Below are positions 53,409-57,398 of a stretch of 64,000 nt of DNA, piece after piece; position 1 is the stretch's first letter; every line of letters begins with the position of its first letter. A program made the position numbers and the translations under genes. This stretch comes from Salpingoeca rosetta (lineage: Eukaryota; Protista; Choanoflagellata): contig JAWQFM010000002.1 in the NCBI GenBank assembly GCA_033442325.1, positions 105,947 through 169,946 on the forward strand, read 5' to 3'. The notes under the pieces are model-generated. The model was given only the letters and a program-made list of their open reading frames with translations, did no database searches and was not told the origin of the DNA.

Positions 53409-56400
53409 ATGAGGATGCAAAACAACCGTGTTGCTGTGGTGTTGGCAGTTGTGGTGGCAGCTATCAGCGCTCCATGGCAGTGCACGGCAACGTCTGTTGC
53501 TGAGCTGTGTACGCCACGCCGCTTCTTCGCTTACGCTGCTCACGGGGACACCAATTCCTTGGACACCTGCATCAACTGTGCGTAGGCAAAGAGCTGAGGG
53601 GGGCGGGGGGCTGGCGGGGATGGCGCACAGAGAGAGAGAGACAGACAGACAGACGAAGTGTGTGTGTGTGTGTGTGTGTGTGTGTGTGTGTGTGTGTGTG
53701 TGTGTGTGTGTGTGTGTGTGTGTGTGTGTGTGTGTGTGTGTGTGTGAGTGTGTGAGTGTGTGTGCTGTTGTTGTGCGACATGACATGACAGCGGCCAGGC
53801 AACAGTCGATGCCAGACAGCGAGCTGGGCATCACATAGTCACATCACGCCTGCCGCCATCTCGTGGTTACCACACTCACACACGCACGACGCATGCATGC
53901 AGATGATTCTAGTCTGGTGGACCAGCAAGATGCCGTGGGATGCAGCCCATTGATTGCCGCAGCGTTCAATGGCCACGAGCACGCCGCGCTCACCCTCTAT
54001 CGGCGAGGTACTGCAGATGCAGCAAGAGCACCACGCACACCGTGCGCGCGTGTGTCTTTCATTTACCAACGTGCATGCACGCATTCTGGTCTGAGCTCTG
54101 CGCAGCGCCTTCACCACACACACACACACACATACACACACACATACACACACACGCACACACACAATACACACACACACAGCCTCACTGTCGCATGTGC
54201 ACTTTGTCTGTCACTCCAACCACACTCTCACACACACGCACACATGCACGCACACGCCCCACGCAGGTAGCCCAGTGGATGCAAGGTGTAACAACAACTA
54301 CAACGCAGTCGCATATGCTCGCTTGAACAGCCACGACGCCATTGCTGCGGTACGTTCAGCCCTGCGGTCTTGCTACCCCTCTGCCGATCAAACACTCGAG
54401 TGTCGTGAAGGGGGGGGGGCTTGGCTTGCCTGCAAGGACAGTGTGTTTGCTTGCTTGCTTGTGGCTTGTTGAGAACGCATCTTGACACGGAGAGCATGTC
54501 CCTCCTGCATGCATGCGTGCGATTGCCTGCAGGCACTGATCCGATTTGGGGCGGCGGATATGCGCATTCCAGAACACCTCGCACCGTGTTCACCAGAAGA
54601 ATGGAGCGTGGCTGTTCGCTCCGGCAATATGAACAAAGCAGAAGAGTAAGCGAGGGCATCTGGGAAACCCGTGTGCCTTCGTGACTGACTCTGCATCTAT
54701 CGCTTGATTGATGAGTGCCTTTCGACCCGATTCACAGACAGGTGTACACAACATGAATGTTCTCGCGTGGCCTGTGCGGTGACAGATGTGTTCTGGCGGG
54801 GTTTGATGTGAACCGGCCACTGGACGCCGGCTGTCCCGCCATCGTCTCTGCTGGTGTGTGTGTGTGTGTGTGTGTGTGTGTGTGTGTGCGTGTGTGTGTG
54901 TGTGTGTGTGTGTGTGTGTGTGTGTGTGTGTGTGTGTGTGTGTGTGTGTGTCCTTGCCAATGTTACGCGTTCTGCTTGACAGCTTGGACCGCAATCCATC
55001 ACACTCAATCACTCAATCACGCACGCACGCACGCGCCTTGGCAGCCATCAATGGAAACGCGGACGCGGTGCAGTATCTGGCTGCGCGTGGCGCACATGCT
55101 GATGGCGCATGCTCTGATGGAAGCACACCGCTCATGCACGCCGCTCGCCGAGGCGATGTGGCCATGGTCAAGGTGTGTTGGAAATATGCACACACACACA
55201 CACACACGGTTACATGCGCACACACGTATACATGCAGACACACGCACGCAAGCGTGCGCTCCTGCAATATTGAGAATGCATAAGCTTGGCCTTTCCATGC
55301 GTTAATTTCCCGTTGCATTGTATCGCTCTGTTGCTAGGTGCTCACGGCTGTTGGCGCTGATATTGAAGCGGAGACACCAGCAAACAAGTGGACTGCACTC
55401 ACATTCGCCACAACCAATGGTCAAATCGAGGTATTTGTTGTACATGCACACATCTGCTCTGCACGCACATGCACACGTGCTCATCAACATGCCAATGCGC
55501 CTTACACCGCCCTTTGCCTTCCTGCCTCAACCGTTGCAGGTAGCCAAGTATCTTCATCGCCTTGACATGGACTTTGGTACAAGTGATTGTGTGTGTGTGT
55601 GTGGGGGTGTGGGTGTGGGTGTGGGTGTGGGTGTGTGCGTGTGGGTGTGTTTTCTTGCTTTCTTTCATTTGCTTGGCCTTTCTGTTTCAGTCATGAGTTG
55701 GAGAGTGCGAATTGTTTGCATCTGTAGCAGCAGGGAATACCACGTGCACATGCGTCCCCGGTCAACGTGTGCGTTTCACTCGTGCCGTTCAGGTTCACGC
55801 CAAGGTTGAGACGTGCACCCTTGGACAACAAACTCTCACATGCTCTGTTGTGCAAATTGTGAATACCGGGGCGTTGCCTGCAGAGGAGCGTGAGTGGACG
55901 GGCACGCCGCTCATGTGGGCAGCCGCCATGGGCCAGGAGGACATGCTCCAGCACCTCCTCAAGTCAAGTGCGTTGCCAGAACAGCAATGTGCTGCAACTT
56001 GTTTTGCCTGCAGGCACTGTTGCGTATGTGGGCGCTGCTTCCTGCGTTGCTCTTTCGCCACTCTCCTATGCGTTGACACAAAACATAACACGTGACTTCC
56101 TTGTCCTCCTTCCCTCGTTTCCTTTCTTCCATTTAATTCTTCCCATCATTTGCGTGCGCGTGTGCGTGCAACACAGATCGCAAGTCGTGGAAGGCGTTGG
56201 AGACGCGCGATGAACACGGCCAGACAGCTGTGATGTGGGCTGCGCAGACAGGCCACTTGGGCTGCCTGATGCAACTGGTGCAAGCTGGTGCCACCCTGCA
56301 GGTCACAACACATGCTGGCTGGACCCCGCTCATGGCCGCAGCCTACGAAGGACACCACGGCATTGTCGAGTACCTCCTGGTCAGTCAGTGTGTGTGTGTG

Positions 56401-57398
56401 TGTGTGTGTGTGTGTGTGTGTGTGTGTGTGTGTGTGTGTGTGCCTTTGCATATGTGTCGATGTGAATGACTCACATTGTGCTGCCATGATTCATTTCAGC
56501 GTAACGGCGCCGACAAGGACGCGCGCGACAAAGGGGGATGGACCGCTATCATGTGGGCGATTGTTGGCAACAAGGTATCTCATCGTGCACATGGACCGCC
56601 CTTTTTTCGTGTGCGTGTGTGTTTGGTTCTTTTAAAGTGCTCTTTCACAAGCTCGTGTTCCTTCTGCCGCGCACTCATGCACGTGCTTGCGTGTGTTGTG
56701 GTTGCCAGCGAGAAATTATGCAACAGCTGCTTGACAGCGGGGCCTCTGTTGCACCAACAGTCCACGGCTGGTCGCCGATCCTGGTCGCGGCAGCCACAGG
56801 TGTGCACGTGTGCGCCGTGTGGCGTGACTGTCCTCGACTGTGTTGCGCGTGCGACTGATGACCATGTGGAGCAACAATGACGGAAAACATGCGGGCACTT
56901 GCCCGAACTCTCCCACTTACACGAGTGCCTTCTGCTCGCTTGACATGTTGCCTGCAGGCAACGAGCAGCTGTTCACGCTAATGATCCAGAATGGCCAGGA
57001 CCTGATGTCGCATCTTGACAATGGGGCAACAGGCGAGGACATTGCACGCCAGCACGGCCACCATCGCCTCGCCGAACACCTCCGCCACATGTTCAACGCC
57101 CGCCGCAGATACACAGAGGGTGCGCACATAATTTGTGTGTGTGTGTGTGTGTGTGTGTGTGTGTGTGTGTGTGTGCTCTGTGTGTGTGTGTGTGTGTGTG
57201 TGTGTGTGTGTGTGTGTGTGTGTGTGTGTGTGTGTGCAAACATGTTTTTCGTCGTGCAATTTGCTGAGCCGTGTGCAAGTGTTGCTGATGAGCTGTTCCA
57301 CTCTCTACTTGCATATCACACGCGCACCACTCACTCGTTCGATTTCTATTGCGCAAAACACATCATCAGGCGGCAACGAAGGCCACGATGAGCTCTGA
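53409..57398 (+). CDS. Ankyrin-repeat protein with N-terminal signal peptide and C-terminal HDEL, ~14 exons
   Basis: [27 protein letters not shown]; ankyrin motifs [98 protein letters not shown]. Phase-1 splice 57119/57370 yields ..[13 protein letters not shown]. Confidence 0.88.

Follow-up and report, generated by a model that had tools for sequence, protein, structure and literature searches.

Can a protein built almost wholly of ankyrin repeats reside in the lumen of the endoplasmic reticulum (ER)? The question is raised by a gene of the choanoflagellate Salpingoeca rosetta, PTSG_13132, which occupies positions 53409-57398 of the forward strand in a 64,000-nucleotide (nt) stretch of contig JAWQFM010000002.1 (assembly GCA_033442325.1, positions 105,947 to 169,946), hereafter referred to as the window. 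Ankyrin repeats are very common protein-binding modules, which are overwhelmingly cytosolic or nuclear, and the ER residents with a KDEL-type C-terminus are a small and well-characterised set of chaperones and foldases. The product of PTSG_13132 combines ankyrin repeats with an HDEL terminus; it is probably a soluble resident of the ER lumen and a member of a small family conserved across the choanoflagellates.

A conserved family of ankyrin proteins with KDEL-type ends would amount to a new kind of luminal binding protein, since its conserved cysteines and its depletion of N-glycosylation sequons look like adaptations to the lumen. If this reading is true, a cytosolic repeat fold would be shown to have been refitted for the oxidising secretory pathway of a eukaryote, and the family would make lineage-specific ER quality control accessible to study in the animals' closest relatives. 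S. rosetta is a model choanoflagellate for which transfection, an ER marker and genome editing are available, so that the localisation of the protein, its dependence on HDEL, its disulfides and its clients are directly testable.

Gene structure and domain organisation

Splicing of the window sequence yields a gene of 14 exons with an open coding sequence (CDS) of 1440 nt (479 codons and a stop), which starts with the ATG at 53409 and closes with the TGA at 57396-57398 and in which 13 of 13 introns are of the GT-AG type. The exons lie at 53409-53577, 53903-54007, 54267-54349, 54533-54645, 54786-54853, 55045-55172, 55338-55430, 55540-55576, 55884-55967, 56177-56379, 56500-56574, 56709-56799, 56958-57119 and 57370-57398. 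The spliced product of 479 amino acids is identical, letter for letter, to the public protein P0003 (PTSG_13132; XP_004987933.1; UniRef F2USF5), which is encoded on S. rosetta scaffold GL832994.1 (GCA_000188695.1) and annotated as 'hypothetical protein'. Thus, the exon chain proposed in an earlier note on this DNA, made from the letters of the window, coincides with the existing annotation, and its claim of a 29-nt last exon (57370-57398) that ends the protein with GHDEL and a stop is borne out both by splicing and by the identity to the public protein. The match was retrieved with exon 13 alone as the query in a representative library, where the remaining matches were giant generic ankyrin proteins. 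No Logan transcript contig was found to encode exactly this protein, the sole carrier being the NCBI genome scaffold.

Residues 1-27 (53409..53489) form the predicted signal peptide, in which the n-region MRMQNNR is followed by a 16-residue uncharged and strongly hydrophobic h-region (residues 8-23) and by Q-C-T-A, with C-T-A preceding the likely cleavage site as judged by eye from the -3/-1 rule. Kyte-Doolittle hydropathy, averaged over a 19-residue window, is 1.97 at residue 8 and reaches a maximum of only 1.05 elsewhere in the protein.

The remainder of the product up to its short tail consists of ankyrin repeats. Pfam matches to Ank (47.9 bits, cut-off 21.1) and Ank_2 (48.6 bits, cut-off 27.3) were obtained from single exons and Ank_4 also matches; the Pfam matches are to Ank-type families only, and thioredoxin, Hsp70, lectin, J and peptidyl-prolyl isomerase (PPIase) domains and the chromodomain are absent from them. 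An AlphaFold2 model based on the family alignment, with a mean predicted local distance difference test score (pLDDT) of 84.7, contains 13 helix pairs, of which three lie in residues 28-131 and ten follow one another without interruption in residues 136-470, the two blocks being joined by a low-confidence linker at about residues 133-135. In the model the tail carrying HDEL is disordered, with pLDDT values under 50 for residues 477-479. The best Foldseek matches of the model (E 1e-18 to 1e-17) are 5y4d, 4rlv and 7uzu, which represent AnkB and AnkR, and DARPin fusions; the searches of the PDB with Foldseek and of the ESM Atlas returned generic ankyrin solenoids and no functional lead.

The N-terminal part of the solenoid carries an internal duplication. 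The first three-repeat module (residues 28-131; exons 1b-4a; 53490..54568) aligns with the second (residues 132-235; exons 4b-7a; 54569..55376), such that Cys34, Cys54, Cys70 and Cys99 correspond to Cys138 (54587-54589), Cys158 (54787-54789), Cys173 (54832-54834) and Cys202 (55110-55112), respectively. The second module, delimited by alignment and by a module hidden Markov model (HMM), is found family-wide, whereas the extra N-terminal copy is confined to the proteins of S. rosetta and Hartaetosiga gracilis. Intron 3 (54350-54532, after residue 119) and intron 6 (55173-55337, after residue 222), both of phase 0, occupy equivalent spots in the two modules if a one-residue gap is allowed for, and the other introns of the two copies are without correspondence. 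The remaining repeats (7-13 of the model) extend over residues 236-470 (55377..57118) and end in a long capping helix (residues 452-470). They are followed by the last intron (57120..57369; 250 nt, phase 1), which contains a (TG)n microsatellite, and by the last exon, which encodes (G)GNEGHDEL and the stop, with the HDEL codons at 57384-57395.

Conservation across the choanoflagellates

A search with the full-length protein identified four additional protein clusters that stand well clear of the ankyrin background, and a profile built from the five members separates the family (517-613 bits) from the next, generic ankyrin protein (312 bits). Six lineages are represented in all: S. rosetta, H. 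gracilis (475 amino acids, full-length identity 42%), two Stephanoeca diplocostata paralogues (366 and 513 amino acids), a transcript-derived protein cluster from Logan assemblies (461-462 amino acids) and an uninterrupted open reading frame (ORF) of 385 amino acids on a metagenome contig (L007:57-1211). S. rosetta, H. gracilis and S. diplocostata together presumably cover both choanoflagellate orders. In addition, four marine metagenome contigs of about 1 kb each (L002-L005; ENA/TARA) carry exons 11-13 of the orthologue from an uncultured close relative of S. rosetta, with nucleotide identities of 75-88% that are restricted to the exons and with one extra intron dividing exon 13. A dinucleotide repeat is present in the orthologous last intron of L002 (approximately 1018-1044).

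Both ends of the protein retain their character throughout the family. In all members, a short n-region leads into 7-22 uncharged residues and small residues occupy -3/-1, the value of seven (P0062) describing one run within a longer hydrophobic N-terminus, and the relatives have no later hydrophobic segment (19-residue hydropathy at most 1.26). The C-termini of the six lineages are HDEL, HEEL, HTEL, HSEL, RSDL and KTDL, and RTDL and KTEL occur in variants more than 90% identical to the KTDL protein, so that only conservative changes occur inside the motif. The sequence upstream of the motif is unconserved and the tails vary in length by about 90 residues; selection therefore acts on the last four residues. 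An approximately 90-residue extension rich in Lys, Arg and Glu intervenes between the ankyrin cap and the motif in P0060 and P0063 (one Stephanoeca paralogue and the Logan cluster) and is lacking in the S. rosetta, Hartaetosiga, P0062 and L007 proteins. Among 354 other ankyrin proteins fetched, none has a [KRH]x[DE]L ending and none the four-cysteine module.

The PROSITE pattern ER_TARGET, [KRHQSA]-[DENQ]-E-L at the very C-terminus, matches HDEL of S. rosetta and HEEL of its orthologue. HDEL, HEEL, KTEL, RTDL and RTEL were found on ER-located proteins (HEEL, KTEL and RTDL on human ones) in a mammalian screen, in which the -3 position was nearly free and accepted any residue but proline (Raykhel et al. 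2007, PMC2140024); HTEL, HSEL, RSDL and K/RT[DE]L fit the extended motif code of that study. The signal is also functional in the organism itself, where a signal sequence and the C-terminal HDEL of an endogenous protein hold mCherry in the ER (Booth et al. 2018, PMC6333174).

Two further features set the family apart from other ankyrin proteins. All 6 members carry Cys138, Cys158, Cys173 and Cys202, and with the HMM of the four-cysteine module the five protein clusters reach 117-124 bits, L007 77 bits and everything else 51 bits or less. N-x-S/T sequons are depleted, with 2 observed in five family proteins against 10.3 expected from composition (Poisson P = 0.002), while the ratio of observed to expected sequons in control ankyrin matches is 1.1. 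The invariant cysteines and the scarcity of sequons would fit the location of a tightly packed repeat fold in an oxidising lumen.

The earlier note had described the product as a soluble ER-resident ankyrin protein on the basis of a hydrophobic signal-like N-terminus, the absence of any other transmembrane segment and a composition of almost nothing but ankyrin repeats, and had looked to orthologues that keep both the signal segment and a retrieval-type ending. The hydropathy values given above agree with its description of the N-terminus and of the absence of other membrane segments, the Ank-type matches along the whole length together with the 13 modelled helix pairs uphold that of the repeats, and a signal-like segment together with such an ending was found in 6 of 6 lineages. 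The proposal of a soluble ER resident is thus supported by six lineages with a signal-like segment, no other hydrophobic segment and an end of the type read by the KDEL receptor. The statement in the note that a characterised family of such an architecture could not be named is in accord with the literature and the family searches; in full-text searches of one open library, no publication on an ankyrin-repeat protein of the ER or its lumen was found, nor any that mentions PTSG_13132.

Bacterial proteins of similar length account for many of the nearest matches outside the family. Transfer from periplasmic ankyrins of bacteria was considered as an origin and was not taken up, since the repeat consensus largely determines how similar two repeat proteins appear and a tree would be untrustworthy.

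The surroundings of the gene contain several simple repeats. (GT)n/(TG)n microsatellites are present in 4 of the 13 introns (53658-53745, 54854-54951, 56388-56441 and 57134-57236), in each case reading GT along the coding strand; the repeat of intron 5 starts with the splice-donor GT itself, and the 3' flank (57521-57647) contains a GT-rich degenerate repeat. According to the public annotation, a convergent gene for a 295-residue protein with a Skp1_POZ domain lies downstream on the reverse strand (57758-59829), and upstream a gene for a 397-residue protein without Pfam matches ends at 52850. No functional tie of these neighbours to the ankyrin gene is apparent.

Alternative explanations for the two termini

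Four other explanations compete with the proposed residence. The last exon might be an artefact of the gene model, in which case real transcripts would end otherwise and HDEL would be a chance reading. The weak pyrimidine tract of the 57370 acceptor speaks for such an artefact, which is nevertheless highly improbable. If intron 13 is retained, the frame reads through the (TG)n tract as Cys-Val repeats, and three of the candidate acceptors after the 57119 donor (57280, 57370 and 57382) all yield an HDEL terminus. The share of the words (k-mers) of the whole gene stretch is 0.85-0.95 in three genome-like sequencing runs and 0.30-0.34 in four runs from two other studies, the value calculated for a fully spliced mRNA with untranslated regions (UTRs) being about 0.35. 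For 56958-57500, the share is 0.92 in the genome-like runs and 0.40-0.49 in RNA-like runs from at least three other studies, while the value expected for exon 13 joined to exon 14 and the 3'UTR without the intron is 0.45, for exon 13 alone 0.26, for use of the 57280 acceptor 0.63 and for a retained intron about 0.92, as in the genome-like runs. The RNA-like shares thus fit the removal of intron 13 with an acceptor near 57370, although they do not place it to the base. The transcript of Hartaetosiga terminates in KRYSQHHEEL at the position homologous to the last exon of S. rosetta, and the uncultured marine relative has a GT donor of the same phase (phase 1) at the same point, after RYSK, its contigs stopping in a (CA)n run of the last intron, before the C-terminus.

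At the other end of the gene, five ATGs lie within 28 nt at 53294-53321 (forward strand), about 90-115 nt 5' of the annotated start; four of them open mini-ORFs of 1-4 codons, and the fifth, at 53319, is in frame with the CDS and adds 30 polar, Gln/His-rich residues before the signal segment. An uncleaved type II signal anchor, which would leave the solenoid luminal but held to the ER membrane, would be likeliest if translation began at 53319, and the two Arg residues of the n-region favour the N-in orientation that it requires. It is an improbable arrangement all the same: a membrane span would call for a longer uncharged run than the 16 residues of S. rosetta or the 12-13 of P0060 and its close variants, complete orthologous transcript ORFs begin 4-16 residues before the hydrophobic stretch, small residues are kept at -3/-1 in all members, and a soluble-type HDEL would be needless on a membrane-anchored protein. 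The shortness of these segments also argues against a cytosolic protein held on the ER by a P450-like N-terminal anchor, which, like an error in the modelling of the ends, would make the HDEL-like terminus functionless. The usual location of ankyrin repeats, cytosolic or nuclear as noted above, favours a cytosolic protein, as do three lysines after the hydrophobic stretch of P0060, which by the positive-inside rule would place the C-terminal domain in the cytosol if the stretch were an anchor. However, the conserved C-terminal motif, the four cysteines and the sequon depletion would be left unexplained, the gene model agrees with the annotation and the orthologues derive from spliced transcripts; a cytosolic location is accordingly rated as very unlikely. 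The protein might instead enter the secretory pathway and act beyond the ER, in the cis-Golgi, in a food vacuole or lysosome or outside the cell, with a motif that is weak or that merely slows its exit. In the mammalian screen, D at -2 conferred partial ER retention and some motif-bearing proteins were Golgi-located, or were held in the ER even without the motif (PMC2140024), and secreted ankyrin effectors with signal peptides are reported in parasites (PMC8282356). S. rosetta, however, has the canonical HDEL, the same tag that keeps mCherry in its ER (PMC6333174), and a receptor-type ending is kept in all six lineages despite unrelated tail lengths, with no such ending among the 354 controls; action beyond the ER is consequently an outside chance.

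Several points weigh against soluble residence in the ER lumen. The mature S. rosetta protein would hold nine cysteines, an odd number, and a start at the in-frame ATG 53319 could extend the n-region to 37 residues if the transcript begins further 5'. D at -2, as in RSDL and KTDL, makes a weaker signal, E being preferred, and gives partial ER retention (PMC2140024). The 57370 acceptor rests on annotation, on the k-mer shares and on orthologous transcripts. No particular client is indicated by any of the data. Members in Monosiga, in animals and in other holozoans were not seen in word-indexed searches, which are insensitive and swamped by generic ankyrins; a word search limited to residues 132-300 retrieved no more than the proteins of S. 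rosetta and Hartaetosiga, so that the known Stephanoeca members escaped it, and therefore the non-detection is not evidence of absence. With these points taken into account, soluble ER-luminal residence of PTSG_13132 still appears likely from the features of its sequence.

Proposed mode of action and comparison with known systems

From the two terminal signals and the cysteines we infer the ER topology of the protein, its disulfides and its retrieval by the KDEL receptor. The N-terminal hydrophobic segment would direct co-translational entry into the ER and would be cleaved near Ala27. The four invariant cysteines may form disulfides in the oxidising lumen, stapling the N-terminal end of the solenoid, with eight such cysteines in S. 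rosetta and Hartaetosiga, where the module is duplicated; C1-C2/C3-C4 and C1-C3 were considered as candidate pairings. The flexible C-terminal HDEL would be read by the KDEL receptor in the cis-Golgi, so that escaped molecules are returned to the ER. The concave groove formed by the ten contiguous repeats, together with the tethered three-repeat module, may bind other luminal or membrane proteins.

Ankyrin solenoids are not catalysts and bind extended segments of their partners along the concave groove; the likeliest role is therefore that of a luminal binding protein for particular clients, although a client-binding role, like the chaperone or cargo adaptor suggested in the earlier note, is speculative. 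The protein might serve, not as an enzyme, but as a client-specific holding or escort factor or as a retention adaptor, much as RAP, Hsp47 and MESD do; an escort role in particular is proposed tentatively and is open to considerable doubt. In its fullest form the proposal would be of the first ankyrin family of the ER lumen, disulfide-stapled, free of N-glycans and ancestral to the choanoflagellates, acting as an escort or retention factor that cycles to the cis-Golgi and is returned by the KDEL receptor, a combination that we regard as possible rather than probable.

PTSG_13132 resembles the ER residents retrieved by the KDEL receptor, such as BiP, PDI and calreticulin, in its predicted signal peptide, the absence of a membrane span and its C-terminal HDEL. 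No ankyrin-repeat protein is known among the soluble KDEL-retrieved ER residents. The domains of the known ER chaperone and foldase families (Hsp70, Hsp90, PDI, calnexin/calreticulin, FKBP and J-proteins) are absent from PTSG_13132, in which only Ank-type Pfam matches occur. Fold and sorting signal are each known, and their combination, with the accompanying adaptations, was not found to have been described previously in the one open library searched.

The closest structural matches, the membrane-binding domains of AnkR and AnkB and the DARPins, share with the protein a concave groove that binds extended peptides, but are cytosolic or designed and are without a signal peptide, a retrieval motif or a four-cysteine N-terminal module. 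As is proposed for PTSG_13132, a signal peptide and ankyrin repeats occur together outside the cytosol in bacterial periplasmic or secreted ankyrins and in parasite effectors, but these have no KDEL-type end (0 of 354) and no four-cysteine module, and score 300 bits lower against the family profile. A precedent for an ankyrin protein that chaperones specific substrates within an organelle is provided by cpSRP43. That protein carries chromodomains and a transit peptide and is active in the stroma, a reducing compartment, whereas PTSG_13132 has no chromodomain and carries a predicted signal peptide, HDEL and conserved cysteines. RAP/LRPAP1 (HNEL), Hsp47/SERPINH1 (RDEL) and MESD/Boca are ATP-independent proteins with a KDEL-like tail, which hold secretory clients and cycle between the ER and the cis-Golgi. 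PTSG_13132 is related to them neither in sequence nor in fold, and no homology is claimed; it is in the proposed mode of action that they are alike.

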